DNA of 64,000 nt from Schmidtea polychroa (lineage: Eukaryota), in contig CM097885.1 in the NCBI GenBank assembly GCA_044892525.1, forward strand, positions 3,906,001 to 3,970,000. The letters are read 5' to 3'. The position numbers were made by a program, and so were the translations under genes. Below, piece after piece: positions 6,892 to 36,860 of this stretch; within the stretch, counting starts at the first letter, position 1, and the number at the start of each line of letters is the position of its first letter. The notes under the pieces were generated by a model. It had not been told where the DNA came from, searched no databases, and saw nothing but the letters and a program-made list of their open reading frames with translations.

Positions 6892-7270
6892 GTTGTGGAG
6901 AAATTAATGCTGTATTGAATGGCAGTAAAATGCACCTAAATGCAATACTAAAATTGCCTTATATCAAATTGAATAATGCCTTAACATTTCACCTCCGCCA
7001 GCTATTTGTGAGGCATTTCAACGCAATCCACAACAACAATACTGATAAAATGTTCCAAAATTGCTTTCATATCAGTTTGGGTAAGTTTACCAAAATGAGA
7101 GCTGTCGATGCGATGAGGGCAATCGGTGTTTTCTAAACTCTATCAAATTCTGTTACGCATTCATTTAATCATTAAATGAATCACTTTAATTAATTTTTGC
7201 TTTGAATCTTTCATGAAATTTGGATCTCTTAAAGGTCTCCTGTCGGATTTACTAATAATATTATTACCCA
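6892..7270 (-). pseudogene. Inverted partial copy of the Ndc80-like fragment
   Basis: Reverse complement of the 32660-33040 segment, including the same junction to a non-LTR RT fragment. Confidence 0.6.
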
Positions 7271-15147: not shown

Positions 15148-15936
15148 TTGAGATGATCGCAATGATGACTGTTGCAACGGAAATTGTGATTATGATTGGC
15201 AGGACAACATCGACGATGGCCATTTTCACACGCTTTCAGAAATGATGTTTATATCATTGATGATCTAGTGAAAACATTGTTTGTGAGTAAAATAAGACCC
15301 TCCTGTGGCCCTTTAATCAATCTCTATCGCTATTAATATCAACCATTATCACTCGCGCTTTGTACAAAAACAAAGTTTTAACGGTCCTCATTCTAAATTA
15401 CAGTGGAAACTTCAATGGAGAAGTCTCGCCAGACCTGGTTCGAATCACGGCTGAGGCAACATAGCAGGTGAACAGAGATAAAGCGTTGGTGCTCGATCAA
15501 AGTTGGATGGAATTTTTATTGTAACTTGCGGATTACGTCATAACGTTACACTGGAAGATCGAATCAATACAGAACTGTGAGAGGAGAACCATTGAGTGAT
15601 GCAATAACTAAATATTACCATACAAGAGCAAGTCCAATGGCAATTCGTCATGAGAGCAGGCATTCATGTGAATATTGGCGTTACACCTATTCAGAGATGG
15701 AACTGTTTCCCGTTATTTCCTGTGGCATCACGAGGCTACTCAATCGACAGCATTGATTTCCTCACCTGAAAAAAGAAAGACAGCAAAGCCTTAACCCGGA
15801 AAGTGAAAAAGGACCCGGAAGCTGAAATCTGCGCGAACTAGCCTACCCGATTGGAAACCCGATTGGAATTGGAAAGCAATCATTTTGAATGATAATAAAT
15901 TTTATATATTAAATCATAAATGGAAATTAGTCACTG

Positions 15937-16315
15937 AGGAAGCCACTGATAGGGACCCAATGATAGGAAGCCACTGATAGGAAACCACTTATAGGGAGCC
16001 AATGATAGGAAGCCACTGATAGGAAGCCACTGATAGGAAGCCACTGATAGGAAGCCACTGATAGGAAGCCACTGATAGGAAGCCACTGATAGGAAGCCAC
16101 TGATATGAAGCCACTGATAGGAAGCCACTGATAGGAAGCCACTGATAGGAAGCCACTGATAGGAAGCCATTGATAGGAAGCCCCTGATAGGAAGCCGCTG
16201 ATAGGAAGCCACTGATAGGAAGCCACTGATAGGAAGCCACTGATAGGAAGCCACTGATAGGAAGCCACTGATAGGAAGCCACTGATAGGAAGCCACTGAT
16301 AGGAAGCCACTGATA
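15937..16315. repeat. 14-bp minisatellite (CCACTGATAGGAAG) x about 27
   Basis: Directly visible; explains the three periodic ORFs on the minus strand. Confidence 0.97.
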
Positions 16316-17459
16316 GTTTAAGCTTACGTTTTCAAATTCAGATCTCTATTTATTTAAGTAAAAATCCAAATTCAGGAATTTGAAGTGTCAAGAAACGACA
16401 AATAGAAAGGTCAAGTGAATATAATGATGATAGGGACATATGAAATAGGATACTGCATCTTCTATGATATTTCTGGGAACCTAGAGACACGTCAGGACAT
16501 TAGCAGACCTTGTGAGAAGCTAACCTTTAAATTATGGCTACTATTATGTTGCTATGGTTGATTTTAGTAAAAGAATTTTAATCCTGCGATCTTCGAACCC
16601 ACCTTTAGAAATTGAGTTCACATGCTGAATGATTTTCAACGGCTGTGTACATTCCAAACATAGTGGTTGGCATGGGTATATTGATGGTAAAATGTAAAAT
16701 ATTCATAGAGGCGTTTAAGTAAGAGTTAATGACAAATCTATCAGCAAGTCTAGGACGTTAAAATAACACTCGCCAGATTCTGTGTTATTTGCTAACCGAA
16801 CCTCTAATAATATCTTAACTAGTGACTTGGCCAAGAATTTATAGTGGGGGGGGGTTGAGTTGAGAAATATTTATTAATATTATGGTCAATCATTTGAAGC
16901 GTGGACGAATGAGGGTGCCAAAGGCGCGAAGCACTCATGATAAAGATGCCGTAATAATGACGTCATTCGTTGACTCAATAATATATCAGCGACTCTAGCA
17001 CAATACAACACACTGGCCAGATTCTGAGTTATATGCCAACCGAAACTCTATTGATATCTCAACAACTGCAAGTTTGATTTTAAGAACCTTTTACTTCAGA
17101 TGTACCTAACGAATTTTAGGTTCCTAAATATTTTCTTGTACACTTTCGAGTTAAGATCCTTTAGGTCGCCTTATTATATTTAATTTTTTATATTTTCAGG
17201 ATTTTAAAGATAAATTTCTTTGTTTATTAATTAGTAAAATTAATTCATAAAATTTATCAAATTTCTGAATTTAAATATTAATTAAATATTAATTATTAAT
17301 TTACATGAAATCATTTTTGTTTTAATAATATTGTATTTGAACATTTAGCTAATGAAAAAGTGAATAAATTTATGAAATGTTACATTATTTAATATTAAAT
17401 CATTTCATTAGCTGTTATAAAGATCTCATTACAAATGCAAATATGATTATCATTACATT

Positions 17460-18260
17460 ATCAATAATATGATTAGCAAATCTGACACGAGACCTTTAAG
17501 AGATCCAAATTTCATAAAGATGCAAAGCAAAAATTAAATAAAGTAATTCATTTAATGATTAAAAGAATGCGTAACAGAATTTGATAGAGTTTAGAAAGCA
17601 CCGATTGCCCTCATCGCATCGACAGCTCTCATTTTGGTAAACTTACCCAAACTGATGTGAAAGCAATTTGGAACATTTTATCAGTATTGTTGTTGCGGAT
17701 TGCGTTGAAATGCCTCACAAATAGCTGGCGGAGGTGAAATGTTAAGGCATTAATCAATTTGATATAAGGCAATTTTAGCATTGCATTTAGGTGCATTTTA
17801 CTGCCATTCAATACAGCAATAATTTCTCCACAACTCATATAACATCAGCAGCAGCAGCGATGGCGGGTTTCTCGTCGGTTCCATTCGTCATAGGAGCGCT
17901 TGATTTGTTGAGGCGATTTGTCAGCGCTTATATTCGGGTGGATTTTAATTGGATTATTTCTTTCACATTAATTATTAATTTAATTATAATAATTATTCAA
18001 ATTAATTGATTATATTAATTGATATTAAATGTTTTTGATTTAATTAATTGCTTTTATTTGATGATATAATTGATATTGATATTGCAATTGGCCATTTGCT
18101 GTGAGCGCCCCGCCGCCACATAGAACATTTGCAAATGCAAATCAAGCACTCAGCAGCTATCACCTCACCTATCACTGGATAGAATCAATCAGCCATCTCA
18201 GCCAGTGCGGAATGGATTGCGAGCTTGCAACGGTAGCTGATGCTCATTCATAACCCCTCT
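17460..18260 (+). pseudogene. Ndc80-like fragment copy with a further downstream exon-like block
   Basis: Near-identical to 960-1480 and 32660-33460, with an extra frameshift. Confidence 0.55.
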
Positions 18261-18373
18261 CGATCACTCCTGCCACTGCATTATTAATTTAATTATAATA
18301 AATATTGGATTACATGACTGGGGTTAGGGGTGCTTTATTCGAGGGTCCACCGATTATCGATCAATATTTTCAG

Positions 18374-18770
18374 GGTTCTCTGCGAGACTTTTTGACAGAG
18401 AACGGCCCTCAAAAAGAATATCTAATATCATTCGATTTGCTTAGCGGATTCTAGAGGGAATCGATTATCTCCACGGACAAAATATAATCCATCGATACTT
18501 GACAGGTTTGTCACCGAAACCGGTCGATTTGTGTTTTAGGAGCAAAAGGTCTATTGGATGAGAGTTTGAATGTGAGATTGCGCGGTTCTTCGAAGTGTTT
18601 CAGCGATATCTCCAGTGAGAATTTCTGAGTTGCCGCAGGCGATTCCAGTTTCGGAACTTACAATTGGACCGCACCGGAAGTGATGACCACTGAAGGTTAC
18701 GGCAGCATTGCTGATATTTGGTCATTTGGTGCAATTATGATTGAATTGATCACCGGTGAAATTGATTTTA
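18374..18770 (+). pseudogene. MAP3K (MEKK2/3-like) kinase-domain fragment
   Basis: GSLRDFLTENG..RILEGIDYLHGQNIIHR|small intron|..GTYNWTAPEVMTTEGYGSIADIWSFGAIMIELITGE; HRD and DFG motifs are destroyed. Confidence 0.8.
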
Positions 18771-18942
18771 TCTCCCAATGGCAAATCTGAGTAATTATTG
18801 ATTCAGGCAATTATTGATCCCTATCACGTTTTGACACCCTTTCAAGCAATTTTTTGAATTGGTACGACGAAGAAAAGCATGTTTCCCTCTCAGGTGCCCC
18901 CGTAAGCAATACTAGATTAATCACATCTCATAGGTCCACCAG

Positions 18943-21900
18943 GAAATCAAGGCTTTCATCTTCTCATTCGCAATAAGAAACTCCACCATCTTCGTCGATC
19001 CATATATAGGTAACTCGCTAATCCAGCACAACATCCGTACTTTCTTCGAATCCTTTCCATTTAGAGACTTCGCAGAATGGAATGAGATTGTCATGCCAAT
19101 GTATAATGGTAAAAACAACTGGTTTCTGTTCTTTCTTGACAAACGCCGTAAACTCGCTCTTATAATAGATTCTACAGTTAATGATTCTTACTCTTCTTAC
19201 AACGCTCTTGGCAATAACATCCTCACCACTATCCTTGACTTCCAAAAAATCATTACGCCTGTTGAAATTAAACTAGAGCAAATCCAATATCCACGATGTA
19301 TTAGTCCAGATGAATCAGCCTTCTTTGTGTGCCACATGACTGAATGTTTAATTTTAAATAGAAAATTAACTTCTCCCAATATTCCGAATATGATAGAAAG
19401 AATTAGGATAATATTGACAAAATTAGGTAATACTAGACTGCCTACTGATGATGTAAGAAAATATCGGACATTTATCAGTAGTCTTATAATTGATCTTAAT
19501 ATAGACGCAACCGACTGTGATAATGTACTAGGAGAAATAGAAAAAATAAACGCTAATATCAATGAGAAAAAATATTTAATTAAAAAACCCGCAGATATAG
19601 TCCATAAAAAACAAAAAAATAATAATGAATTAGTCATGATAAAAAGAAATAGGTACAAGTTTAACCCCAAGGAGGAGATTGCGAGAATTTTGAACAACGA
19701 GGTTAATTTTCAAAAGCCCATTATGGCAAATCTCCTTAAGCTTTTTGCAGGTGAAATAGCTAAGTGTCATCCTGAAACAATTAAATATATCCCAAATTAT
19801 CCTGAAAACCACTCGTCTACCCCATTCGATATTGACGAAATTAAATATATTTTCAAACAACTGGACAATACTGCTCCAGGAATGGATTTGATTACCCTAG
19901 CTAATTGGAGGAAAAATTTCTCCTGACTACCAACTAATACTTGCTATATGTAACAATATCATACGGAATGCCAACTGCCCTACAAACTGGAAAACGTTCA
20001 GAACAAAACTCATCCTAAAACCTGGAAAAAGTGAAACAAGTTTTGATGCAAGCTCATGGAGACCAATTTCAATAATGAATACTGCCTACAGAGTATTTTC
20101 ATCACTCTTAAACAACAGACTTCTTGGATAATTAAGGAAGGAAACCTTATATCTAGAAATCAGAAAGCCATAGGAGCCTCTGACGGTTGTGCAGAGCATA
20201 ACCTTATCCTACAATTAATTAAAGACTCCGCCTTCAGAACCAAGAGTGATCTGCACATTGTCTGGCTCGACATTTCTGACGCATTCGGCTCACTACCTCA
20301 TAACCTAATTTGGCACACTCTATCTGCAATGGGCCTTGACTCCAAAACTATTAAACTTATCAAAAATATGTATGATGGCGTAAATACTATCTTTGATTGT
20401 GAAGGGGAAAGATCCCCTGAGGTACCCATAGTTAGGGGAGTTAAACAGGGATGCCCCCTATCTATGACTCTTTTTTGTCTGGCCATAGACTTCATACTTA
20501 GAGGCATCCTCATCAGTCACCCTTTCATCTTTAATAACATGAACATAGGTATACTAGCATATGCCGATGACATTGTGCTGGTGTCTGACTCTTACGCCTC
20601 TATCAAATCTGCCCTATTAGAAACTACCCGGCTTGCTTCATTAGCCAACCTCAGATTTAAACCATCGAAATCTGGTTATTTTCACATTGATCACGAGCTC
20701 AACTTTTTTCCGATAAAGCTATATGGGGAAATCATTCCAAAAATAGATGATTCCAATCTATATAGATACTTAGGAATTGATTTTACCCACAAAAAAAGAC
20801 ACAACATAGACGACAGACTTGAAACTGCCGTTGAGGATACTAGAAAGATTCTCGAATCCCACCTCCATCCATCACAGAAAATAAATGCCTTTAAAATCTT
20901 CATCCATTCTCGTCTTATTTTTCCTTTTCGTAATTGTGAGATCCTTCATGGTGTCCTTGATTCTCATAAGGACAAAATCATCAAAAATAGAGAGCCCCAA
21001 AAAGGTTTTGACCAGAAGATTCGTAAGCTCATCAAAACATCTCTAGGAGATAAACTACTCCAAATTAACAATCATTTCATATACGCATCGGTGAAAATGG
21101 GAGGTATTGGACTAACCTCAGCCATTGATGAATATCTCATACAAAGTATTGTACACCTTGCTCGGGCACTAAATTCTTCTGATATAGGCTTCCAAAATCT
21201 AGTACTAATGGAACTTGCATTATCACGGGGTAATGGCAATATAGAGGCTGCCTTATCATGGATCAATGGTGATACTACAAAAAACTTTGGTTATAAATCA
21301 TTTTTTTCTAAATTCAGGAAATCCGTCGACCTCTTAAGATTAAAATATGGAATTTATGTCAAAATTGTCTTACTAGATGACATGTACCAGCTGGAAATAA
21401 AATACAAAGAAAGGATCAATTATTTCTTCTCCACAAATCTCAACAACACATCATCAGAACTCCACTCAATAATAGGCTTAATCCATGCAGAAAAATGGAT
21501 CAATCTCAAATGCCAAGGGCATATTGCTAAATCCATATTCAATAGTAGCGTGGCTGACTACCTGGTTAAAACTGACACTCTAACCGATGCTCAATACCTA
21601 TTCCTTCTAAGAGCAAGAAACAATCTCCTTAAACTAAACTATGCACCACATAGATTAAAGGCTAAAAAAAATACTCTATGTAGGCAATGCAATTCCCACC
21701 CAGAGACACAGGTGCATGTATTCAATCACTGCCCTGCAAAAATAAATGCAAGAAGAAATAAGCATACACGTGTACTAGAAGCGGTATGTCAATCTCTTCT
21801 TAACTATGGATTCAAAATGGACATCGAACGCAAGCCACAGGGAATCGAAACTACCTTAATACCTGACCTACTCATCAGATCATCGAGAAATAAAATTACC

Positions 21901-23003
21901 CACATTGTAGATATCAAAGTACCTTACGAGCAAAGGGAAAATTTTAAAAAAGCGGATGCAGATAATTACGAAAAATATGCCAATTTGGCAATCGAAATAG
22001 AAAAAACTCATAAAGTAAAGACTACATTGTCTACTTTGATAATAGGTACTCTAGGCTCTTGGTACAACAAAAACGACCAAGTTCTCAGTAAAATAGGTCT
22101 CTCCAAAACTGAAATAAAAAGCCTGGCTAGAAACGCTTGCACAGCTGCGGTAGTAAGCAGCTATCATATCTTTAGAGAACACACCCTTAAGGAATAATAT
22201 ATATATATATATATATATTTATAGTATATAATATCAATGCATACCCATATTTATTTGTACACTATGGTTATTATAAACGTAATACGATAAATACGTAGTT
22301 GTTCAGATTCTCATATGTCTCCTCCAGGGATTGAAAATACCTATAACAATGACTAATATATGTATATATATATGTATATAGGTATAGTTGTATTTATATA
22401 GCTCAAATACTTTACTATTATATTAATATTAACTAATGAGGGGTTTTACTTCTAATATTTTTACTTTTTTACTTTTAATATTTAATTACCAATGCGTTGC
22501 TATTTGCCTCAACTAATAACTCTATCCTCTTCTAATAATCTTTATTTAAACTTGAATAAATATAAATAGAATAATATGGCTTATGGGTAAATGTAGGGGT
22601 CCTTGTATGGACCCCGCCCATAGGATAATACTTTTTTAGGTGTTCATATCTGTAATATATTAAAACCCTTGATACTTTACGACATCCTTTCAATCCCTAG
22701 TATATTATAAGTACATCAGCTATTAACGCTATAAAAATCACAAATGGAGTCTTCCTACTCCGAAATTTTAATCTTAGTAGACAGGAAGCATAAGCTGATT
22801 GGACTGAAAGCCTCCCCAACCGATACTAAACCAAGCCAAAAAAAACCATGTTTGATGCCAGAGTTCCTGACTCCAGCATCCAATGAGAATAGACATAAAA
22901 ATATCAGATTATTTAAGGGTGAGAACCGTTCTCCCCTTCGGCCTTGTGCCAGATTGATGTACATAAAATAAAATTTGATTTTTTTTTTTTTTTTTTTTTT
23001 TTT
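18943..23003 (+). mobile_element. NeSL/R5-like RLE non-LTR retrotransposon A, 5'-truncated, with two compensating frameshifts (about 19915 and 20125) and a T25 tail
   Basis: Ulp1-like domain, RT (WLDISDAFGS, GVKQGCPLS, YADD), CCHC (CRQCNSHPETQVHVFNHC), RLE (PDLLI..VDIKVP). The flanks reconstitute the empty site seen at about 33960-34000. Confidence 0.92.
20056..22197 (+). CDS. RT-CCHC-RLE portion of element A (true frame from about 20126)
   Basis: ORF track 713 aa with YADD and PD..D.K motifs. Confidence 0.85.
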   Translation: METNFNNEYCLQSIFITLKQQTSWIIKEGNLISRNQKAIGASDGCAEHNLILQLIKDSAFRTKSDLHIVWLDISDAFGSLPHNLIWHTLSAMGLDSKTIKLIKNMYDGVNTIFDCEGERSPEVPIVRGVKQGCPLSMTLFCLAIDFILRGILISHPFIFNNMNIGILAYADDIVLVSDSYASIKSALLETTRLASLANLRFKPSKSGYFHIDHELNFFPIKLYGEIIPKIDDSNLYRYLGIDFTHKKRHNIDDRLETAVEDTRKILESHLHPSQKINAFKIFIHSRLIFPFRNCEILHGVLDSHKDKIIKNREPQKGFDQKIRKLIKTSLGDKLLQINNHFIYASVKMGGIGLTSAIDEYLIQSIVHLARALNSSDIGFQNLVLMELALSRGNGNIEAALSWINGDTTKNFGYKSFFSKFRKSVDLLRLKYGIYVKIVLLDDMYQLEIKYKERINYFFSTNLNNTSSELHSIIGLIHAEKWINLKCQGHIAKSIFNSSVADYLVKTDTLTDAQYLFLLRARNNLLKLNYAPHRLKAKKNTLCRQCNSHPETQVHVFNHCPAKINARRNKHTRVLEAVCQSLLNYGFKMDIERKPQGIETTLIPDLLIRSSRNKITHIVDIKVPYEQRENFKKADADNYEKYANLAIEIEKTHKVKTTLSTLIIGTLGSWYNKNDQVLSKIGLSKTEIKSLARNACTAAVVSSYHIFREHTLKE

Positions 23004-23210
23004 AATAATCAAAAATCACCTCATAGGGCAGCATTGAACCATTCTGACAGCTGTTGATGCTCACTGCGGTTTCCTTTCAGCACTGTTTCTTGTTACACGC
23101 CATCATCGGTTCTTGTTTGGTGCTCATCTGGTGCGCATTTGCACATATCCACGCCAACTGAACGCGATTCCTCACAGCAAGTTGATAAGCTTTCCAATTG
23201 AGCGCTTTAG

Positions 23211-23244
<34 letters not shown>

Positions 23245-23597
23245 AATTTTATTTTAACTAAATTTCTAGGGCCACCTGGCCAGGAAGGGGAGATCGATTC
23301 TCACCCTTATGTAATCTTCTGCTTTTATTCAATACTCTGTGGATGTTAGAGTGCAATACTCCTTCATCTAACGTGTTTTCTTTGAAACCTTCAGTCTGGC
23401 TTGTGGTCTGGGTTCCATTCTGAAGCTCCTGAAGTCTCATTCAACATTTATAGGTAGGCATCTTTGAGAAGAGTAGGTATAATCATGGCTAATCACAGGT
23501 TTGATCAGCCATGTCTCGTATAGATAGGAGATAGACTGATTGTAGATAAGGTTATGCTTTGGTATACTTATATATAGATAAAGATATAGATTTTTGT

Positions 23598-23940
23598 AGC
23601 AGGTCACATAGAATAGATTGATTGCACATAGGGCGTTCTTATATTGTATGATAGGAGAGATCAGGTAGTAGTTGATGTTTTCCGAGGGTTGATCGTGGGA
23701 ATGAATTCGGTTGTGATTGTAGCAGGTCTCAGTGTGATGATAGATTAGATTGATTGCACATGGGACGTTCTTATAGGAGAGATCAGGTAGTAGTTGATGT
23801 TTTCCGAGATTTGATCGTAGGAGTGAATTCGGTTGTGATTGTAGCAGGTCTCAGTGTGATGATAGAGTAGATTGATTGCACCGGGACGTTCTTATATTGT
23901 ATGATAGGAGAGATCAGGTAGTAGTTGATGTGTTCCGGGA
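23598..23940. repeat. About 120-bp tandem repeat x about 3 in the 3' UTR of element B
   Basis: AGCAGGTC..GATTGATTGCAC..GGAGAGATCAGGTAGTAGTTGATG recurs at about 23598, 23720 and 23843. Confidence 0.85.
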
Positions 23941-25307
23941 TTCTCTTAAATACATATAAAAGTTGGAGCAGGAAGGCTCCCCCGCGAGGTTTATAGCGCA
24001 GTGATAGTTACTTATTATAGTATACATTAAAAGGAGTTGAAGGTTCGGGTGATATAGTAGTATTAGAATATTAGTAGTGATAATAATAGTATCAATAGTA
24101 TAGTAGAGATTATTATAATATTAATATAAACAACTAAAAAGACCACCAAATAGGCAGAACCCCTACAAGGGTTCCTACATTAACCTATTCGGTGATTGAC
24201 ACTCAGTACCGTAATTATAGATGATGATATGTATAATAATATTAGTAAAATAATAATAGTAATAATAATAGTAATAATAACAACAACAATAACAATAATA
24301 GTAGAGACAATAGCAAAAGTATAAATAATAGTAACAAGTATTAGTAAGAAAGGTGTTAATAAGACAAGGGGAGGTAATAAGATAATAAGGGGAGATAATA
24401 AGATAATTTATAATGATAAATGGTGACAATGAGATAAGAATAATAATAAAAAACAAATAAGATTAAAAAAAAAAGGTGNNNNNNNNNNNNNNNNNNNNNN
24501 NNNNNNNNNNNNNNNNNNNNNNNNNNNNNNNNNNNNNNNNNNNNNNNNNNNNNNNNNNNNNNNNNNNNNNNNNNNNNNNNNNNNNNNNNNNNNNNNNNNN
24601 NNNNNNNNNNNNNNNNNNNNNNNNNNNNNNNNNNNNNNNNNNNNNNNNNNNNNNNNNNNNNNNNNNNNNNNNNNNNNNNNNNNNNNNNNNNNNNNNNNNN
24701 NNNNNNNNNNNNNNNNNNNNNNNNNNNNNNNNNNNNNNNNNNNNNNNNNNACAACAATAATAAACATGGCAGCAATAATAAAAAATAATAGAAATAACAG
24801 TTATCAACAATATTAATAGCAAAAGTAATAGTAGCAGATGCAATGAAAAACCAGCAAGAAATCACAGTAATAAGCAAGAGTGATAATGGTCATAACAGTA
24901 GCAAAAATAATGCCAATATCCAGCATATTATTATAGTATTGGAAGTTTGAGTTTTATGATTTTAGTATAGTAGAATCGTAAGTTGAGGTAAAAAATTAAA
25001 TTATGGGTTTAACAATGTTATTTTAATTTTATTTTTATAACTATATATCAAGTTATCATTAGTTTATTATTTAATAATATGATAGATCCATAATGTATAA
25101 TATTGCTTTCAATAGTTAGTTACTAAAAAGTATATAATAGAGGTTGTACATATGTCAGCGCCCAAGGAGGATTTTCTATGCTTAATATTAATTGAATTAT
25201 TGAGTGTATTATTTAGGAGGATAGCTTGATATAAGTATAATACAGCCATAATGGACAATATAGATAGTAATCAATGCTTTGAGTACAAATATATATAGAT
25301 AATAATA

Positions 25308-28300
25308 TCAGTCTTTGAGTATGTGTTCTCTTAGGATATGGTAGCTACTTATGACAGCCGCCGTGCAGGCTTTTCGAGCTAGACCTATAATTTCTTGTTT
25401 CGTGAGGCCAATTTTTTTAAGTACCTGATTATTGTTGCTATCCCAGGATCCCAGAGTACCGATTACTAGGGCTGAGATAGTGGTTTTGGTTTTGTAGGAT
25501 TTCTCAATATCAATGGCCAGGTTGGCGTATTTAATATAGTTATTTTTAACGGCAGTTTTAAAGTTTTCTTTTTGTTCGTAGGGGACTTTTATGTCGAGTA
25601 GATGAATGTTCTTATTTCTAGAAGATTTTATGAGAAGATCAGGTTTAAGGGTTGATTTTACACCCTGAGGTGAAGTTTCAATGTCAAAGTGAAAGTTATA
25701 ATTAGAGAGACATTCACAGACCGCTTCAAGGACGCGGGAGTGCTTATTTCTGCGCGCATTAATTTTCGCAGGGCAGTGGTTGAATATGTGGGCCTGTGTT
25801 TCGGGGTGTGAGTTGCACTGCCTACAGAGAATAGATTTTCTATTTTTGAGTCGATGAGGTGTGAAATTTAGGTTTAGTAGGTTGTTGCGCGCCCTAATAA
25901 GAAAGAGGTATTGGGCATCGCTGAGTATATCAGATTTGAGGAGAAAGTCAGCAGTGCTGCTGTCGGTTATAGATTTGGCAATATGACCCTGATATGTTAG
26001 GAGCGTCCATTTTTCTGCGTGTATATAACCAATGATGCAGTGTAGTTCAGAGGAGATGTTCTTCATGTTTTGTTCATTAAAGTAATTAATTCTATCTTTA
26101 TATTTGATTTCAAGTTGGTATAGGTCTTCTATAAGCACAATTTTGGCGTGTATGCCATATTTCCGACGAAGCAGATCAACAGATTTTTTGAATTTCGAGA
26201 AGATAGAATGAGTTGGGAAGGATTTAGAGATGTTGCCATTAATCCATGACATTGCAGCTTCAAGGTTACCTTTGCCTCGTGCTAAAGCAAGTTCCGTGAG
26301 GACAAGATTACGAAAGATGAGATCTGATGAGTTTAGAGCACGCGAGAGGTGTACTATGCTTTGTATGATATATTCGTCTATTGCAGCAGTAAGACCAAGT
26401 CCGCCCATTTTTATAGAGGCGTATAAGAAGTTGTTGTTAAATTGCAAGAGCTTATCCCCCAGAGAGGTTTTTATCATTTTTCTTATCTTATTGTCAAAAC
26501 CTTTTTGGGGGATACGATCTTTTATGATGGTATCTTTATGAGAGTCTAGTATTTTATGGAGAATTTCACAATTACGGAAAGGAAAGATCAACCGAGAGTG
26601 AATGAATATCTTGAAGGCATTAATCTTTTGAGATGGGTGAAGATGTGAGTTTAAGATTTTTTCGGTGTCTTTAATAGCGAGTTCAAGTCTTTCATCAATA
26701 TTGTGCCTTTTCTTATGTGCAAAGTCTACTCCTAGGTATCTGTAGAAGTTCGAGTCATCTACTTTTGGGATAATCTCATTGTATAGTTTAATTGGTTGGT
26801 GGTTATTATTGTCATTTAAGTGAAAATAACCTGATTTCGAGGGTTTAAATTTTAGATTGGCTAGTGAGGCGAGACGAATAGTTTCAAGGAGAGCTGATGT
26901 GATTGATGGGTATGAGTCTGAGATCAATACGATGTCATCTGCGTATGCTAAAATACCAATATTCATATCACCAAACATGAAGGGGTGAGAGAGAAGGATA
27001 TTTTTAATAATATAGTCGATAGAGAGGCAGAAAAGAGTCATGGAGAGTGGGCATCCTTGTTTCACTCCTTTCAGGATGGGAACTGAGGGTGATTTTTCAC
27101 CTTCGCAGTCGAAGATGGTCTTAACATTGTCATACATGTTGTTTATTAGCCTGATGGTGTTAGGGTGTAAACCAATTGTAGAAAGAGTGTACCAGATGAG
27201 GTCATGTGGTAGAGAGCCAAAGGCATCGGTGATATCCAGCCAGACAATATGGAGGTCAGATTTGTTTCGTATGGAAGCATCCTTAATGAGTTGAAGGATA
27301 AGATTATGTTCAGCGCATCCATCGGGAGTGCCGATTGCTTTTTGGTTTTTAGAGATAAGGTTACCCTCTTTGATCCATCCAAGGAGTCTGTTATTAAGGA
27401 GTGAGGAGAAAACGCGGTATGCTGTATTCATGATGGAGATCGGTCTCCATGAACTGGCTTCGTGGCTTATCTCATTCTTACCGGCTTTGAGGATAAGCTT
27501 TGTCCGAAAAGTTTTCCAAGTAGATGGGCAGAGGGAATTCCTTTGGATGTTATTACATATAGAGAGAAGAAGTTCAAAATCTGGTGATATCTTTTTCCAG
27601 TTGGCAAGTGTGATAAGATCTAAGCCTGGAGCGGTATTGTCAAGGTTGGAGACAATGTATTTGATCTCATCAGTATCAAAGGGAGTAAAGGAGTAGTTTT
27701 CAGTGAGGGAGCAAAGGAGGTTAATAGAAAGTGGATTTGATGTGACCAATTCCCCTGCAAAAAGTTTGAGAATATTGGTCATGGTGGGTTTTTGAAAGTT
27801 AGATTCATTGTTTAAGATCTTAGATATCTCCTCCTTGGGGTCGAATTTGTATCTGTTCCTTTTAATAACTAGTAATTCTTTGTCTAGTTTTTTTGATTTA
27901 TGAATAATGTCTGCTGGTTTTTTATTAATATATTTTAAGGCGTTAATATTTTCATTTATTTTTATAATTTCACAAAGGACTGTATCACAGTCAGTTGTAT
28001 CTGTATTTAAATTAATTATGAGGCTATTGATAAATGGGCGATATTTTCGCACATCATCACTAGCCATTCTGTTATTTAGTATTTTTTTAATTACAATTTT
28101 AATCCTATTAATCATATTCTGGATGTTAGGTGAGGTGATCCTATCATTTTTCATGAGGCATTCAATCATGTGGCATATAAAGAAGGCTGATTCATTAGGA
28201 GTGCTGCATCTAGGATATTCGGGGTATTGAAGATGGATAGTGATAGGGGAGACAATTTTCTGTAGGTCTAAGATGGTTTCGAGGATACTATTGGCAAGTG

Positions 28301-28574
28301 AAAGGTGGATAGAGGGACTTTCATCGGTTGTAGGGTCAATAAGTACTGCCAGCTTTCGGCGTTTGTCTAGGAAGAAGAAGAACCAGTTGTCTTTAGCATG
28401 ACACATTGGCATGATGATCTCGTTCCAATCAGAGAAGTCTTTGAAAGGAAAGGTTTCAAAGAAGGTCTTGTAGTTGTGTTGTATAAGAGCGTTACCTATA
28501 TAGGGGTCGACGAAGATGGTGGTAGGTCTGATGGCAAAGGAAAAGATGAAGGCCTTGATAGAGTGTTGTGACCA
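25308..28574 (-). CDS. Element B ORF2: inactive Ulp1-like protease + RT + CCHC + restriction-like endonuclease
   Basis: The 1034-aa ORF extends 54 open codons upstream to the ORF1 stop. Motifs SWRPISI, WLDITDAFGS, YADD, CRQC..H..NHC, KPDLLI..LLDIKVP. Confidence 0.93.
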   Translation of the reverse strand, partial: WSQHSIKAFIFSFAIRPTTIFVDPYIGNALIQHNYKTFFETFPFKDFSDWNEIIMPMCHAKDNWFFFFLDKRRKLAVLIDPTTDESPSIHLSLANSILETILDLQKIVSPITIHLQYPEYPRCSTPNESAFFICHMIECLMKNDRITSPNIQNMINRIKIVIKKILNNRMASDDVRKYRPFINSLIINLNTDTTDCDTVLCEIIKINENINALKYINKKPADIIHKSKKLDKELLVIKRNRYKFDPKEEISKILNNESNFQKPTMTNILKLFAGELVTSNPLSINLLCSLTENYSFTPFDTDEIKYIVSNLDNTAPGLDLITLANWKKISPDFELLLSICNNIQRNSLCPSTWKTFRTKLILKAGKNEISHEASSWRPISIMNTAYRVFSSLLNNRLLGWIKEGNLISKNQKAIGTPDGCAEHNLILQLIKDASIRNKSDLHIVWLDITDAFGSLPHDLIWYTLSTIGLHPNTIRLINNMYDNVKTIFDCEGEKSPSVPILKGVKQGCPLSMTLFCLSIDYIIKNILLSHPFMFGDMNIGILAYADDIVLISDSYPSITSALLETIRLASLANLKFKPSKSGYFHLNDNNNHQPIKLYNEIIPKVDDSNFYRYLGVDFAHKKRHNIDERLELAIKDTEKILNSHLHPSQKINAFKIFIHSRLIFPFRNCEILHKILDSHKDTIIKDRIPQKGFDNKIRKMIKTSLGDKLLQFNNNFLYASIKMGGLGLTAAIDEYIIQSIVHLSRALNSSDLIFRNLVLTELALARGKGNLEAAMSWINGNISKSFPTHSIFSKFKKSVDLLRRKYGIHAKIVLIEDLYQLEIKYKDRINYFNEQNMKNISSELHCIIGYIHAEKWTLLTYQGHIAKSITDSSTADFLLKSDILSDAQYLFLIRARNNLLNLNFTPHRLKNRKSILCRQCNSHPETQAHIFNHCPAKINARRNKHSRVLEAVCECLSNYNFHFDIETSPQGVKSTLKPDLLIKSSRNKNIHLLDIKVPYEQKENFKTAVKNNYIKYANLAIDIEKSYKTKTTISALVIGTLGSWDSNNNQVLKKIGLTKQEIIGLARKACTAAVISSYHILREHILKD

Positions 28575-31500
28575 TCATGCAGCCTCCTTATCAATATTAT
28601 TAGTAAATAGGATATTGTCAGGTATGTCCCTATTTATGATTTCATTATTTAGAGGTGATAGGATTGCCTCTTGCGTATCCAGAATATCATTAAAAAGGTT
28701 ATTTTTAGTATTAATATCTACGCTGTTACTGTAGTCATTATTCACGGGGCTATTCGGGGTCTCCTTATTGGGGTGATGATCCTCAATATGGTTTTTGGAG
28801 TCCTGATATTCTATCCACTCTCCACAGAAGCAATTAATTTTTAGATTGATGTCAAATTTTAAATTTTTATGATGTTTTATCATATGTGTATTTATTGTAT
28901 CTAAGGGTGTGTCAATGTCGAAGGATTGGAAGCACTTGTTGCAGTTTTTGTTTAGATTGTGGCATAAGAAACGGTTTGCGGAAGTAATTTTCAGGGTAAT
29001 AGTCTTAAGGAAGTCCTTGTTTACACTACAGTGGTGCTCAAATTGGTCGATGTGGTTATATAGGTTTCTAAGGGTGATGGTGTTCAAGATAGATCGGCTT
29101 CCTTCCCCTTTGGGTCTACATTGGTGGCAGTCGATCAAAGAGTCGTAGGTTATAGCGATGTTGTGAATTTCTTGGGCGTGTGACCTAATCCTATCAATAT
29201 CAGTGGCAGAAATTTGTCCACAAAAAGAAGTATGGTGGCATCCACGGCACTGTAATTTGCCCCGTAGATCAAAGTAGTATAATATTTCATCATTTATGTC
29301 TTTGGACATTGTATCTTTATTTATTATAGTTTTTCTCGTCTTTATGAGGTCTAAGGTGGGGGGTTTAAGAGTGTACGTTTTACCTCTAACCTCTAGGCTT
29401 TTTTGGAATTTTATGTCTTTTCTGTGGTGGATGGGAGTGGATGTGGTTGCGTATTTTGGTGTCTCTTTAGCAGAGGGTATAGTGTCCTTCAGGTTTATAA
29501 GGTTTGGTGATTTACGTTCAGTGTTTTCGACAGGGATAAGCCTTTTAGGAATAGGGTATGATCTATCAAGGTCAATGTTTTCGGAGGAATGAGAGTTGTA
29601 GGTTTTCTTTTCTTGCCTAACAGGGGTTATGGTTGTAGAGTCATCTAGCGGTGATGGTCTAACTGAGGGATATATTTTGGGTTCCTCGATTGAGTCGGTA
29701 GGTAGGGTAAGGTTATAAGAGTTGGATTTCTCAGGCAGAGGAGGTGAGGGGTTGTTAGTAGGAAGGGCTATGAGAGGGGCGTTTGAGGAAGGAGGTTCAT
29801 TGATAGAGCTTTGGTCAGAGGCACTGCTAGAGAGTACGACGTCATCACAGTCGGAGTTGAATAGATCGCTTGGGTATTCTGGAGGTCTGACATCCTCTCG
29901 GTCTGATATAGGGGATTCTATTGTGTCGTCAAAGTAACAGCTATAATGGGATGTATCGATACTGATCTCCGAACAGGAGGAGTCACTGTCAGGGTCATAA
30001 GATAGTTCAGATAAGCTAGGGCATGATGAAGTATCTTCTGGGGTGTGGGAAGAGGAGGCATTATTCATAGTATTAGATTTAATATATCTAACCTTTTTAA
30101 GGAGTTTTTCATTGGGTCCGATAACCTTAGGACAAGAAAGATTCGGAATAGGCTTGGAAAAATGTGGCCTACTACATGTTATTTGGTTATGGTAGGTTGG
30201 TTTCGATACTTTAGTATTGTTGGGTAGAACAGGGGGAGTAGATAACCTATCGGTGTTTACTTTATTAATTAATGAGATATTTTTTTTAGTAGATTTATTT
30301 GTGGTATATTCCATGTCCATATTGTCTATCAGGGAGGCATATCTATTATTTGTCATATTAATGATAGTAGTTTTAGCTGGGAGAGTGGGTAAAATATCAG
30401 GTGATGCAATGCCTGCAAGAGATGTAGAATTTTCGGTACTAATATTGTTGATTTCTTTTGAGTTAGGATTATTTTTATCATTTGTAGGTGAGATTTCTGC
30501 ATCTACATCATCTGCAAGAGTCGCCTTCTCAAATAATATTGAGGTCAATTGTCGATAGTTAATATATAGTATATAGAAGAAATTTCTAACAATAAAAGAG
30601 TTTACTTTTTTATTGTTATTTTTTAATTGGGTATGGATATCCTTAAAGAGGTAATTATTAAGGTTTATTAATATGGAGTTATAATTTTTAATGAGATACT
30701 TATTATTGTGGTAGGGTATAAGCCTCAGATCAAAAGGTGGTTTGTCGCTATTGGATGGTTCAAGGATATCTATCAGTTTATGGTAATTGCTATTAAGGTC
30801 CTTGAAGAAACAGATATAGGTGGCGGTTAGCATTTGTGGGTTTGAGGATTTAAGATGGAGAAATTGTTTTTTAATTTCCCTAAAAAAATTGGTTCCGATT
30901 TCACCAATGTTATGGAGGTATTCTGGGTCAGAGTTCTTATAAGAGGCTGAGGTATAATCAGTAGTATTAATATTGATGTGTTCGTCAGTAGATAAAGAGG
31001 TGGTAGGATTTTCAATAACTGAAGAAATAGCAAGATTGTCGCTGAAAGTGACTGTCTTTGAAGATGCGAGTCGGCCGTAGGCCGGCGAGCTGCGTGTTTT
31101 CTCGTGTTCCGAAGGAACACGAGAAAAATTTTTTCTAGAAAGAGTGTGGTAAGAGAAATTGTGATATTTAAACAAGGAAATATTTTTGTTTAATATCGAT
31201 AATTTATTTAATTCAATGAAATTAGATATATTAGATAAAATAGTGTTAATTAATTCACCTGAAAATGCTTTAGCATCAGGGACTTCTGGAGAATTTTCGT
31301 AATAATTAGTAATAATTTTTTTAATTATAAATTTAATTTTACTTTTAAAAAATTTTTCAAATTTATCATTTTGGTTATTAGTATAATTTGAATTATTATT
31401 ATAAGTTAAATTATCATTATCGTAGGTAGAAGTATTTTTATATTTAAGGTTATGAGGAAGGTTAAAAGATTTATTATTTAAATTTATATTATAATTATTA

Positions 31501-32027
31501 TCGCTATTCATAGTATAATTATCATTATTATATATATAAGATTTATTTGTATTAAAAATAGAGTTCAGATTAGAATTGTCATATGCAGTATAATTATTAG
31601 TAGGTTTAGAATTATTAATATTAAAATCAAAGTTTCCATTACTCAAGTTATCCCTATTATAATCTAATATACAATTAACATCATTAAGTTTACAGTTATT
31701 ACTATCATAGTTAAAGCAAATTGGTTTATTATCTTTATAATAATTTTGATTATAATTACCATTTTTTATTATGTGAATCTTTCGAGCTGGGCAAAAAGTT
31801 TTCCAAGAGGTTGCATAAATTTCGGATGTTTCATTCGCTTTAACATTCTTCACGGAATAATAGCTCTTAGGCATATGGTTCATTTCATTGTTGCGGGTTA
31901 GAGAACTTCCATTATTGATCAGCTCCTTGTGAATAAATGTATCCTTTATTTTAGTACATGTTGCAGCAAATGTGTCGTATTGCTTGAGGATTATCCTAGC
32001 TGGGCAATAAGATCTGATTTTCCTCAT
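28575..32027 (-). CDS. Element B ORF1: Asn-rich N-terminus, Ser/Pro-rich linker, four C-terminal C2H2-like zinc fingers
   Basis: Uninterrupted 1150 aa; CRGC..H..EIH, CHQC..H..EHH, CNKC..H..KHH, CFC..H..DHH. Confidence 0.85.
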   Translation of the reverse strand: MRKIRSYCPARIILKQYDTFAATCTKIKDTFIHKELINNGSSLTRNNEMNHMPKSYYSVKNVKANETSEIYATSWKTFCPARKIHIIKNGNYNQNYYKDNKPICFNYDSNNCKLNDVNCILDYNRDNLSNGNFDFNINNSKPTNNYTAYDNSNLNSIFNTNKSYIYNNDNYTMNSDNNYNINLNNKSFNLPHNLKYKNTSTYDNDNLTYNNNSNYTNNQNDKFEKFFKSKIKFIIKKIITNYYENSPEVPDAKAFSGELINTILSNISNFIELNKLSILNKNISLFKYHNFSYHTLSRKNFSRVPSEHEKTRSSPAYGRLASSKTVTFSDNLAISSVIENPTTSLSTDEHININTTDYTSASYKNSDPEYLHNIGEIGTNFFREIKKQFLHLKSSNPQMLTATYICFFKDLNSNYHKLIDILEPSNSDKPPFDLRLIPYHNNKYLIKNYNSILINLNNYLFKDIHTQLKNNNKKVNSFIVRNFFYILYINYRQLTSILFEKATLADDVDAEISPTNDKNNPNSKEINNISTENSTSLAGIASPDILPTLPAKTTIINMTNNRYASLIDNMDMEYTTNKSTKKNISLINKVNTDRLSTPPVLPNNTKVSKPTYHNQITCSRPHFSKPIPNLSCPKVIGPNEKLLKKVRYIKSNTMNNASSSHTPEDTSSCPSLSELSYDPDSDSSCSEISIDTSHYSCYFDDTIESPISDREDVRPPEYPSDLFNSDCDDVVLSSSASDQSSINEPPSSNAPLIALPTNNPSPPLPEKSNSYNLTLPTDSIEEPKIYPSVRPSPLDDSTTITPVRQEKKTYNSHSSENIDLDRSYPIPKRLIPVENTERKSPNLINLKDTIPSAKETPKYATTSTPIHHRKDIKFQKSLEVRGKTYTLKPPTLDLIKTRKTIINKDTMSKDINDEILYYFDLRGKLQCRGCHHTSFCGQISATDIDRIRSHAQEIHNIAITYDSLIDCHQCRPKGEGSRSILNTITLRNLYNHIDQFEHHCSVNKDFLKTITLKITSANRFLCHNLNKNCNKCFQSFDIDTPLDTINTHMIKHHKNLKFDINLKINCFCGEWIEYQDSKNHIEDHHPNKETPNSPVNNDYSNSVDINTKNNLFNDILDTQEAILSPLNNEIINRDIPDNILFTNNIDKEAA

Positions 32028-32271
32028 TTCATATGGATCAGCAGGTGATTCGTCAGGTGGGTTCTCATCGGTTCTATATATATGATTAGGATGTAATAAG
32101 TTTACTTTGTCGATTGATTTATCACTGGAAGAAGAGCCTCGTCCATGTGAATCTGGGGGAGCCGCAGGAGATCCGTGGAGTCGAATATCATCAGCTCTAA
32201 GAAAAAGTTTAGATAATAGTAGCAGTTATGAATAACGCCAAGTATTTCTCATTATTGGATGCCCGTACTAG

Positions 32272-33460
32272 CATCTCTCTCTTAAATATCAATTAAAAAG
32301 CACTGACAGAAACCGTTAACCTTGCACAAAAGTAAATTTTAATTTTAAACCATCAAAATCAGGATATTTCTCACTCAATAAAAACGAATGCCCTACGGAA
32401 CTATACAATGAAAAACTACCGATTATAAACGACTCGAATATTTATATATATTTAGGAGTCGATTTATCTTATAAACATAGACATAATATAGACGGAAGCC
32501 TAGAACAAGCACTCATAGACACTATAAAGGTCTTCTAATCACACCTACACCCAGCACAGGAAATCTCAGCCTATAAAATCTTTATACACTCACATCTAAT
32601 GTTCACCTTGCGCAATTGTGAAATAAATCACATGATACTCGATTCAAAGAGAAAGGAAGGAGTAATGGGTAATAATATTATTAGTAAATCCGACCCGAGA
32701 CCTTTAAGAGATCCAAATTTCATGAAAGATTCAAAGCAAAAATTAATTAAAGTGATTCATTTAATGATTAAAAGAATGCGTAACAGAATTTGATAGAGTA
32801 TAGAAAGCACCGATTGCCCTCATCGCATCGACAGCTCTCATTTTGGTAAACTTACCTAAACTGATGTGAAAGCAATTTGGAACATTTTATCACTATTGTT
32901 GTTGCGGATTTGTGTTGAAATGCCTCACAAATAGCTGGTGGAGGTGAAATGTTAAGGCATTAATCAATTTGATATAAGGCAATTTTAGTATTGCATTTAG
33001 GTGCATTTTACTGCCATTCAATACAGCAATAATTTCTCCACAACTCATATAACATCAGCAGCAGCAGCGATAGCGGTTTTCTCGTCGGTTCCATTCGTCA
33101 TAGGAGCGCTTGATTTGTTGAGGCGATTTGTCAGCGCTTATATTCGGGTGAATTTTAATTGGATTATTTCTTTCACATTAATTATTAATTTAATTATAAT
33201 AAATATTCTAATTAATTGATTATATTAATTGATATTAAATGTTTTTGATTTAATTAATTGCTTTTATTTAATGATATAATTGATATTGATATTGCAATTG
33301 GCCATTTGCTGTGAGCGCCCCCACTCCTCCGCCACATAGAACATTTGCAAATGCAAATCAAGCACTCAGCAGCTATCACCTCACCTATCAGTGGATAGAA
33401 TCAATCAGCCATCTCAGCCAGTGCGGAATGGATTGCGAACTTGCAACGGATGCTGATGCT
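32272..33460 (+). pseudogene. Third-family NeSL RT fragment (32272-32660) fused to an Ndc80-like fragment (32660-33460)
   Basis: FKPSKSGYF..YLGVD..HLHP..YKIFIHSHL runs directly into KSDPRPLRDPNFMKD. The same junction occurs inverted at 7270. Confidence 0.7.
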
Positions 33461-33584
33461 CATTCATAAACCCTCTCGATCACTCCTGCCACTGCATTAT
33501 TAATTTAATTATAATAAATATTGTAATACACGACTGGCGTTAGGGGTGCTTTATTCGAGGGTCCACCGATTATCGATCAATATT

Positions 33585-33805
33585 TTCAGGGTTCTCTGCG
33601 AGACTTGGCAAATGTGAGATTGCGCGGTTTCGAAGTGTTTTAGCGATAAATTCTCCAGTGAGAATTTCCGAGTTGCCGCAGACAATTCCAGTTTCGGAAC
33701 TTACAATTGGACCGCACCAGAAGTGATGACGGCAGTGAAGGTTATGGCAGCAATGCTGCAGCAGTCATTTGGTGCATTGAATTGATCGCCGGTGAAATTG
33801 AGTTT
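33585..33805 (+). pseudogene. Second MAP3K kinase fragment, internally deleted
   Basis: Homologous to 18374-18770 (GTYNWTAPEVM) but lacks the YLH..IHR segment. Confidence 0.75.
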
Positions 33806-34553
33806 AATCTGAGTATTTATTGATTCAGGCAATTATTGATCCCTATCACGTTTGACACCCTTTCAAGCAATTTTTCTAATTGGTACTACGAATAAAATCC
33901 CTCCCCCCGCATGTTCCCCTCCCAGGTGCTCCCGTAAGCAGCACTAGATTGATCACATCTCATAGGTCCACCAGTAAATCAATAATCACCTCGTAGGGCA
34001 GCATTGAGCCAACCTAACAGCTGTTGATGCTCACTGCGGTTTCAGCACTTTCAGCACTGTTTCTTGTTACACGCCATCATCGGTTCTTGTTTGGTGCTGA
34101 TCTGGTGCGCATTTGTACATATCCACACCAACTGAACGCGATTCCTCGCAGCAAGTTGATAAGTTAGGATTTCTATCTGAGGGCGAGAATTGTAAATGTG
34201 CTGCAAATATATATTAATGGGTAAATGGGACAATAACAGATATTCTTATGGAAGTTTTTGATTGTAGTTGTGGAAATTTTGAACTGTTAGTTAGTGGACG
34301 TCTGAAACGATTAAAAAATGACAGTGGACTAGTCGTGTTAGTCGCTATTATATTATATCTGCCTTGTATCAATTTGTTGCTGCTGATGCTGATAATATCG
34401 GATGGAAGGCGCACAAGGGGGGGGGGGGAGAATGACAATGATTATCACAATAATTATCTCATAATAAATCAATAATAATAATAAGGCAAATAATAAATCA
34501 GATCAAAAGCCAAAATAAATCAATTTTTTATTGAAATGTTTTTTTTGAATTTG

Positions 34554-35667
34554 TCATAACTTTTCAATTCTGCACCTGAGCAGCAATTTATTACTTTTGG
34601 CTGCGAATTTATAAATTGAGCGATCATTATTATAAATGCGAATTGGGTCATTTCTGTCATCTGATGGTTTCAACCATCCGGAATGATAAGGCCAATCTGA
34701 ATATTTCATTGACTGGCTCCTATAAATGTTGCCATTTGCTGGATCGATCATATCGATTGTCACCAATTGATTGAAAGGCCAATCCAATTGCTCATCATTT
34801 TCCCCACGCATCAAATAGAAATCGATATCAACCCAAATAGTCTGAGAACCCCTAATCTCCACTGCCAAGCAAATTTTGTAACCGATTGGCCCGGAATAAA
34901 ATGCGTCGCTGTAAATCAACCTATCTCTCTCTTGTTTTGAAAATTTATCGATTTGCCATTCAAAAAATCCATTATTTATATATTTTTCACTTCCTAATTT
35001 TGTTTCAATCTGCCGAATTTCATTGGCGCATTTTGCCATTTCAAGCTGCAACTGAATCTCAAATTCAAACATTTCAATAAATCACCTTTTCATTCTCCCG
35101 TTGCAGTCGCTGCTCGCATTTCTCTTTCATCTCATCAATTTGCTGTTGACAGTTTGCTACAATCACCTCAATTTGCTCTCTGATCTGCTTTGCATCAATA
35201 ACAAATCAATAACAAATCAAATCAATAATCAAACTTGATTGATTGATCCAATATTTCTCTCCATTCTCAATGAGCGATTCTCATTCTTCACAGCCGCCAT
35301 TTTCTCATTCAATTCTTCTATTTCTGCTCTGTTCTCCGCCTCTTTTCTTTCAATATTGCTCAATTTCACTTAAAATCACAAATATCAATTAAATTAATTA
35401 CAAATAAAATTTTACATTGATATTAATAATTTCCTCACGCAATTTGACATTCTCCTCTCTCATTGCCTGCATCTCATTGCACAAATTGCTGATCTGATCA
35501 ATCAGTAATTTGCTATGGCCTTCATTGTTCTCATTGAGATGTATTTTCATTTCGTCCTTCTCAACTCCAATCATTTCGCATCCAATTCTATTAAACGGGC
35601 ATCTAATTGGTTGCTTGTTACATGTTCTCATGTGACTCTCCATCATGCACAACTCTTTCTTACACAA
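34554..35667 (-). pseudogene. traf: TRAF copy 2, 5'-truncated (no RING), with a mutated splice acceptor and an open MATH exon
   Basis: Homology stops at about 35660. The intron 1 acceptor TGTAG is changed to TTTAA. MATH ORF 34554-35072. Confidence 0.85.
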
Positions 35668-36099
35668 GTCTTCTTACCTAAATGGTTAATTTGTTAACAA
35701 TGAAATTTTTGTTTCAGTGCTTACCTTTTATACTAATTTTTGCGTATGTGCGGACCAATCAAAATTGAGTGCCGCTTAATTATTTATTTTAATTTAATTT
35801 TTATGTTTCTTTGCTAATTTTCTTATTTTTTCTTTATTTTTATTATATTTTTTATTTATTTTCTTAATTTTCTTATTAACTACTTGATTTTTGTGTTATT
35901 TTCCTTATTATTGCAGTTTTTCTTATCTTAATTTTTAATTTTAATTTTTTGTTTTAGTTTTCATTGCCTAATTTATTATTTCTTCTTTATTATGTGTCTT
36001 ATTTTATTTTTAATTTTTTGTTTATTTTTACTCATTTGTTTATCATGTTTGTCTTAATGCTATTTTCTTATTTTTTATTTCAATTCAGCCCAACAGTAG

Positions 36100-36860
36100 T
36101 TTTTCATTGTATAGTTCCGTAGGGCATTCGTTTTTATTGAGGGAGAAATATCCTGATTTTGATGGTTTAAATTAAAATTTACTTTTGTGCAAGGTTAACT
36201 GTTTCTGTCAGTGCTTTTTAATTGATATTTAAGAGAGAGATGCTAGTACGATATCGCCTGCCTTAGCTAATATGCTGATATTATGTCCATGGAAAAGAAA
36301 AGGATGATCTACTAGGATTTATTTAGTATAAAATCAATTGCTAACCAAAAATAAGTCATAGATATTGAGCAACCTTGTTTAACCCCCTTTATAAAAGGTA
36401 CTGAAGATGATTTTTCTCCTTAACATTCAAAGAAGGTTTTTACACCATTATACATATCTTTAATTAGATTTACGGTTTTGTCGATAAGACCCATTTCTGT
36501 TAAATTGTGCCATATGAGGTCATGTTTGATGGACCCGAAGGCGTCTGAAATATCCACGGTCGGTCTTTGCATAGCCAAGTGATCCCTTAATAGTTTCAAA
36601 ATCTCCTCCTTAGGTTTAATTTTAAATTTAAATCTTTTTACAGATAAAAGTTCACAGTCAGATTTTAATTTTTTATGAATTACATCAGGCATTTTAGGGA
36701 AATTATATCTTTGTGGATTAATGTTTCCATTTATCCTTTCCAATTCATTTAGGGCAAATTGAGTATCAATTTTGTTTGTGTTTAGTTGTGTAGTTAAGGT
36801 ATTTATGAAGGATAAGATGATTGCAGATGAGAAAGGTTGATTAAGGTGGGTCATTACATC
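36100..36860 (-). mobile_element. Third-family NeSL-like fragment with an internal deletion
   Basis: PDVIHKK..KPKEEI..QRPT is fused directly to VDISDAFG; stops downstream. Confidence 0.8.

Follow-up and report, generated by a model that had tools for sequence, protein, structure and literature searches.

Two related non-LTR retrotransposon families of Schmidtea polychroa with a sense-strand T run at the 3′ end

Two related non-LTR retrotransposons, element A on the + strand and element B on the − strand, were found to end 3′ in a sense-strand run of T in a 64,000-nt stretch of the Schmidtea polychroa genome (assembly GCA_044892525.1, contig CM097885.1, positions 3,906,001 to 3,970,000), referred to as the window. 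Comparison with an empty copy of the insertion site of A indicated that the run had arrived with the insert. The families to which A and B belong are new, but their lineage is known, and so is this type of 3′ end, although it has been neglected. A and B are not a new kind of element; the trait is visible in published planarian data. The run is best explained by a U tract that is templated, lies at the RNA 3′ end or a few bases short of it, and has grown through slippage; we assign this reading a probability of roughly 0.55.

Textbook LINEs have a 3′ end of poly(A) or A-rich repeats, the L1 tail taking part in priming. A lineage with a sense-strand T end indicates that a U-rich end can serve R2-like enzymes as a starting point, and raises the question of how the RNA end is formed with a canonical AAUAAA just upstream. 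Repeat annotators that use poly(A) to orient or delimit LINEs will misorient or mis-trim these families. The present case contributes a clear instance for which an empty site is available, together with a comparative series (T5-6 in site-specific relatives, T25-31 here).

In both elements the run is preceded by the identical 14-mer AAAATAAAATTTGA, followed by T25 in A and by T31 in B, the latter read as an A run on the + strand (Table 1); homopolymer lengths of this order may be misstated by a few bases in the assembly. The two runs are the only A/T homopolymers of at least 12 in the window. The 20-mer consisting of the 14-mer and T6 occurs exactly twice in the window, and with up to 3 mismatches allowed four matches were obtained, a number reached in 0/100 shuffles. 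The reverse-transcriptase frames lie on the same strand as the respective T run in both A and B, so the runs are sense-strand T. An AATAAA ends 6 nt upstream of the run in both elements, and the bases beyond T25 in A and beyond T31 in B are unrelated. The sequence-only reading had reported these ends, their sense orientation, the difference in run length between the copies (25 vs 31) and the unrelated sequences following the runs, and all were recovered here; its assignment of both elements to non-LTR retrotransposons with a 3′ T run agrees with the reverse-transcriptase frames and the insertion signature described below.

Table 1. Positions in the window of the features of elements A and B, of the intervening DNA and of the empty target site.
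Feature	Position	Strand	Basis
Element A, 5′-truncated, lacking ORF1	18946..23006	+	alignment to B
Left target-site duplication copy of A, AATCAA	18945..18950	+	left flank matches paralog to 33982, right flank from 33977
ORF2 homologue of A (putative Ulp1-like, RT, CCHC, restriction-like endonuclease), broken	18946..22197	+	translation, domain search
Conserved 3′ module of A: two adjacent hairpins, AATAAA 6 nt before run	22839..22978	+	alignment, folding
T25 run of element A	22979..23003	+	sequence reading, homopolymer scan
Inserted AAT between T25 and right target-site duplication	23004..23006	+	flank alignment to paralog
Right target-site duplication copy of A, AATCAA	23007..23012	+	flank alignment to paralog
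Host spacer between the tails, 92.5% identical to 33977-34163	23007..23189	+	paralog alignment
21 nt adjoining the tail of B	23190..23210	.	no window match
T31 run of element B (A run on +)	23211..23241	-	sequence reading, homopolymer scan
Conserved 3′ module of B: two hairpins, AATAAA, 14-mer	23242..23383	-	alignment, folding
3′ UTR of B, about 2.07 kb, including N run 24479-24750	23242..25307	-	alignments
ORF2 of B (putative Ulp1-like, RT, CCHC, restriction-like endonuclease)	25308..28574	-	ORF, domain search
ORF1 of B	28575..32027	-	open reading frame
5′ UTR of B, upper bound only; fragment of third related family begins at 32264	32028..32263	-	alignments
Empty paralogous target site for A, single AATCAA, T run absent	33977..33982	+	paralog alignment

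A sense-strand T run is also the termination signal of Pol III, and the sequence-only reading had named Pol III-like termination among the possible origins of the tail. The resemblance of the terminal runs to such a signal is offset by the internal sense runs of at least 4 T that precede the tail, 22 in A (4 kb) and 38 in B (9 kb), some of them 7-10 long; in addition, neither a tRNA nor a Pol III-type RNA gene turned up at or near the sites. That A and B are Pol III transcripts with the T run as terminator is scarcely credible. An antisense SINE or poly(A) element was rejected as the source of the runs, since the run would then be located at its 5′ end.

Elements A and B each represent one of two related families, at about 70% nucleotide identity. 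Positions 18946-22223 of A align to 28559-25284 of B at 70% nucleotide identity, corresponding to 67% at the protein level, and positions 22839-23003 of A align to 23383-23217 of B at 76%. An inverted duplication or assembly artefact was rejected, as A and B differ by 24-30%. Both frames are open in B, and A is 5′-truncated and decayed, its ORF2 homologue carrying four in-frame stops and no frameshifts. The 5′ boundary of A is ambiguous over 18946-18951, owing to microhomology with the duplication. The truncation point (18946, equivalent to B 28559) lies 16 nt downstream of the position of the B ORF1 stop; that A starts almost exactly at the ORF2 coding start may be coincidence. ORF1 of B encodes 1150 aa. 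It is closed by a single TGA (28575-28577), after which ORF2 continues without a change of frame; ORF2 is open throughout and consists of 54 conserved codons after the TGA followed by a 1034-aa ATG-started ORF. No Pfam family was assigned to ORF1 of B, and no ORF1 similarity between families was detected by BLASTP or Pfam. The 3′ UTR measures 0.78 kb in A vs 2.07 kb in B and is unrelated between the two in its middle part. Tandem repeats of about 122 bp were observed at 23608-23942 in the 3′ UTR of B (−) and are absent from A. Besides the N run in this UTR, the window contains one at 45601-45956.

Domain searches with ORF2 of B gave an RVT_1 match at 3e-28. The best solved-structure matches were R2 retrotransposon proteins (9nl2, 8.9e-50), the 9nl2 alignment covering residues 197-705 and 801-1010 with a C-x2-C-x12-H-x4-C finger and a KPDL...D.K nuclease motif. 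A and B belong to the non-LTR retrotransposons with a restriction-like endonuclease (R2/NeSL/R4/CRE/HERO group), and A bears the signature of target-primed reverse transcription, namely a 5′ truncation and a short target-site duplication. Peptidase_C48 was matched weakly in A (18.9 bits, short of the 20.7 cut-off, at E 0.0015) and gave no match in the domain search of B; in relatives at 33-37% identity it was matched at 1.3e-12 to 1.9e-08, together with RVT_1. The predicted combination of protease, reverse transcriptase, zinc finger and restriction-like endonuclease fits a NeSL/LIN-type architecture, and the NeSL/R5/LIN affiliation guessed earlier is in keeping with this architecture and with the terminal motif. 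The domain searches of A and B gave no match to Exo_endo_phos (AP-type endonuclease), and no A run is present on the sense strand at the 3′ end of either element. With both AP endonuclease match and poly(A) absent, A and B are not classical L1-like LINEs. No tRNA and no Rfam family was found at or near the sites of A and B, and a small RNA gene as their target was rejected on this basis. The flanks of A and B are unrelated to each other, at variance with target specificity of the NeSL-clade type.

Element A carries a 6-bp target-site duplication, AATCAA, with a matching empty site in a paralogous unit of the surrounding host repeat. The left flank of A (18721-18950) matches 33764-33982 and the right flank (23007-23189) matches 33977-34163, the hexamer occurring once in the paralog and twice around A. 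Since the empty paralog has one AATCAA and no T run, the T run arrived with the A insert; a T run pre-existing at the target was rejected for the same reason. Three inserted bases, AAT, are located between T25 and the right-hand duplication. The sequence-only reading had matched the flank of A to an empty site near 33975 devoid of a T run, which corresponds to the site found here, and had concluded that the tail belongs to the element and is terminal. Its derivation from the element is upheld by the duplication and the empty site, whereas its terminal position is contradicted by the AAT following T25 in A.

For element B, no empty site was found in the window; paralog similarity stops at 23189, and the rest of the host repeat unit beside the tail of B is missing. 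The 21 nt adjoining this tail matched nothing else in the window and are either diverged host DNA or sequence brought in with B. After the T run of B, no extra bases could be assigned to the insert. The 5′ side of B abuts a fragment of a third related family. A and B are placed tail to tail, 207 bp apart (window 22979-23241), and T25...A31 together with the conserved modules forms an imperfect inverted repeat of roughly 165 nt. This placement could be due to chance, to a local insertion hot spot or to attraction of one element to the end of the other.

The last ∼140 nt before the runs are 72-76% identical between A and B, despite the unrelated UTR middles. Folding gave two shared small hairpins, 30-60 nt upstream of the run, in both elements; the shared structure is suggestive only, as covariation cannot be shown with two sequences. 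Folds with and without the U run were no better than shuffles (z −0.1 to −1.6), and a structure involving the tail was rejected on these energies.

The same kind of end is present in published data. In S6 Fig of Kojima and Jurka 2015 (PMC4640811), copies of an S. mediterranea family end in aaaaataaaatttagt followed by T7 to about T15, with flanks after the T runs that are unrelated among copies. The first 12 bases of the window 14-mer are shared consecutively with the motif of this family, the short motifs being compared by eye. T runs of at least 10 are confined to the S. mediterranea block of the supplements of PMC4640811, and A runs of at least 10 occur nowhere in them. The words polyT, poly T, polyA and tail are absent from the main text of the same paper, and no discussion of T/U tails on non-LTR elements was found in the literature searched. 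The sequence-only reading was unsure whether the trait had already been described; it can be seen in this published family (PMC4640811, S6 Fig). The 3′ T run is thus a trait of the lineage, already recorded and not studied.

Similarity to the planarian LIN families (R5/LIN lineage, NeSL clade; Repbase LINn_SM) lies in a near-identical 3′ motif, which in one S. mediterranea family is aaaaataaaatttag(t), followed by a T run. A and B differ from them in having unrelated flanks, no tRNA or rDNA target and longer T runs; this comparison concerns the DNA ends. LIN15_SM and LIN25_SM end ...atttttaa before tRNA sequence (PMC4640811, S6 Fig), the longer form of the end being ...aataa(a)atttttaa. Three of the database relatives of ORF2, L001, L006 and L008, are likewise placed in tRNA genes.

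These relatives were obtained with ORF2, for which the nearest database proteins showed 33-37% identity and were encoded on metagenome or read-archive contigs. Contigs were examined for eight relatives (L001-L008). L008 ends ...AATAAATTTTTAA, directly against tRNA D-arm-like sequence, and L006 ends ...AAAATAAATTTTTTACATTTTTAC, directly against the 3′ half of a tRNA-Arg-like gene; in L001 a similar tRNA 3′ half, with a T8 terminator, follows the element. The terminal form of the tRNA-gene-inserted relatives is AATAAA(A)-T5/6-AA, and the terminal motif is conserved across relatives; in L008, L006, LIN15 and LIN25 there are 2-3 bases between T5/6 and the tRNA gene sequence. The junctions, at 4600-4660 in L001, 5430-5475 in L006 and 6990-7005 in L008, abut either a tRNA-Arg-like 3′ half with a T-run terminator or the D-arm-like GTGGTAGAGC. 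By their junction sequences, the three are tRNA-gene-specific members like the planarian LIN15 and LIN25. No whole tRNA was reported by ARAGORN at the tRNA-like junctions, as expected for split genes. The distant relatives L004 and L005, on large contigs, were uninformative, being from 53-55% GC genomes with no A/T runs near the gene. No same-family copies of A or B were retrieved, the ORF2 protein search giving at most 37% identity. The conserved hairpin had no match in a metagenome scan, and a tail-motif scan returned 34 AT-rich loci, 0/34 with a reverse transcriptase.

According to the preferred reading, that of a templated U tract, A and B would have been inserted by target-primed reverse transcription of an RNA whose 3′ end would comprise two small hairpins, a short linker, AAUAAAAUUUGA, the U tract and zero to a few more bases. 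For its insertion, R2 relies on the 3′ UTR as a guide and does without poly(A). By analogy with R2, the reverse transcriptase would be positioned by the 3′ UTR, not by annealing of poly(A) to the target, so that no poly(A) would be required. The U tract would be copied into the insert as the sense-strand T run, and homopolymer slippage would alter run length, either as reverse transcription starts or when the DNA is later replicated, or on both occasions.

Run lengths form a series of 25 and 31 in A and B, 7 to about 15 in the planarian family and 5-6 in the tRNA-gene relatives. T25 with AAT in A, T5-6 with AA in L008, L006, LIN15 and LIN25, and T7 to about T15 in the planarian family fit a templated tract better than a tail added last; the run would thus be templated and its length set by slippage, a reading that draws on two copies in the window. 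Against the slippage part counts that the step from T5-6 to T25-31 is large. With AATAAA 6 nt upstream, normal cleavage and polyadenylation would moreover predict an A run after the T run; despite this AATAAA, none follows in A or B.

Alternatively, the elements could have been inserted with a short T tract (5-6) that grew later by replication slippage, as a mononucleotide microsatellite does. Homopolymers are unstable and the relatives have T5-6; both runs are also pure although A has four in-frame stops, which suggests ongoing homogenisation. However, the two independent insertions belong to different families and are both long (25 and 31), and several planarian copies reach about 15. Expansion does not seem common at this locus either, as no further A/T run of 12 or more is found in 64 kb of AT-rich DNA. 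Growth after insertion is unlikely on this evidence.

Uridylation of the element RNA by a terminal uridylyl transferase, the U tail being copied at insertion, would account for a variable and homopolymeric run, as expected of a post-transcriptional tail. A tail added last should be terminal, yet the run is followed by AAT in A and by AA in the relatives, which likewise weakens the different 3′ processing (terminal uridylation) proposed in the sequence-only reading. Usual terminal uridylation tails are also shorter than 25-31 U, and this route is very unlikely.

In a further scenario, the nicked target strand would receive untemplated A residues from the reverse transcriptase before the enzyme engages the RNA; the RNA would then contain no U tract, and the length of the T run would be random. 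The variation in run length between copies agrees with this, and a tailing activity is known for the Bombyx R2 reverse transcriptase: 3-4 nucleotides are added without a template, and with manganese single strands are given tails of tens to hundreds of nucleotides (PMC8857657). Long tailing is seen only in manganese, which is unphysiological, and its significance is called uncertain by the authors (PMC8857657). Moreover, the first bases added at the nick of A would be the complement of AAT and not A, and the site-specific relatives keep a fixed, templated-looking T5-6 with AA. Untemplated addition of A is an unlikely course. That the template carries a long 3′ poly(U) synthesised independently of DNA, whether through terminal uridylation or through the reverse transcriptase of the element itself, is quite unlikely; if true, it would represent a mode of 3′-end formation and start-site choice without counterpart among described LINEs.

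Like A and B, in which the Ulp1-like stretch is putative, NeSL-1 of Caenorhabditis elegans and Utopia-1_TSP have an Ulp1-like protease ahead of the reverse transcriptase, with a zinc finger and a restriction-like endonuclease at the C-terminus (PMC4640811); not every member of the NeSL clade has the protease. NeSL-1 and Utopia differ in target, which is spliced-leader genes for NeSL-1 and U2 genes for Utopia, and B in turn differs from both in its large ORF1 followed by one in-frame TGA. R2, which supplied the best structure matches, is alike in reverse transcriptase, linker, CCHC and nuclease; it differs in being specific for 28S rDNA, in its N-terminal zinc-finger and Myb domains, and in having neither protease nor ORF1.

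The I factor, with (TAA)n, CR1 and RTE have simple-repeat tails other than poly(A), with a copy number that differs from one insertion to the next; slippage at the start of reverse transcription is the usual explanation. They are comparable to A and B in their short 3′ repeat unit of varying number. They differ in their AP-type endonuclease, and the repeat unit in A and B is a single T.

The arrangement of ORF1 and ORF2 in the same frame with exactly one TGA between them was observed in B and in 6/6 relatives with an upstream ORF (L001, L002, L003, L006, L007 and L008). The separating TGA is followed by CT in four of these seven elements. The 54 open codons of B from the TGA to the first ATG align to the N-termini of the ORF2 proteins of the relatives. 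The in-frame TGA resembles a site of programmed UGA read-through (gag-pol style) or recoding. We know of no description of this arrangement for the NeSL/LIN clade.

The host DNA consists of a tandem array of repeat units with TRAF-like genes and a protein-kinase fragment (Pkinase 4e-10). Units at 750-3300, 17230-18950, 32650-35700, 40100-42900 and 59300-61400 encode TRAF-like proteins (RING, zf-TRAF, MATH) on the − strand, and the kinase fragment, with an upstream in-frame stop, is present in two units. A single database relative, at 61% identity, was found for the TRAF-like ORF. Fragments of the third related reverse-transcriptase family, at 7227-7982 (−), 32332-32709 (+) and 36103-36809 (−), show 46-60% protein identity to ORF2 of B; none of them retains the C-terminal part or the 3′ end, and they were duplicated along with host repeat-unit sequence. 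LTR-type pol remnants at 4385-5979 (−) consist of separate short ORFs with aspartyl protease, RVT_1 and RNase H-like segments, and a tandem array with a 14-bp period extends over about 530 bp at 15853-16386.
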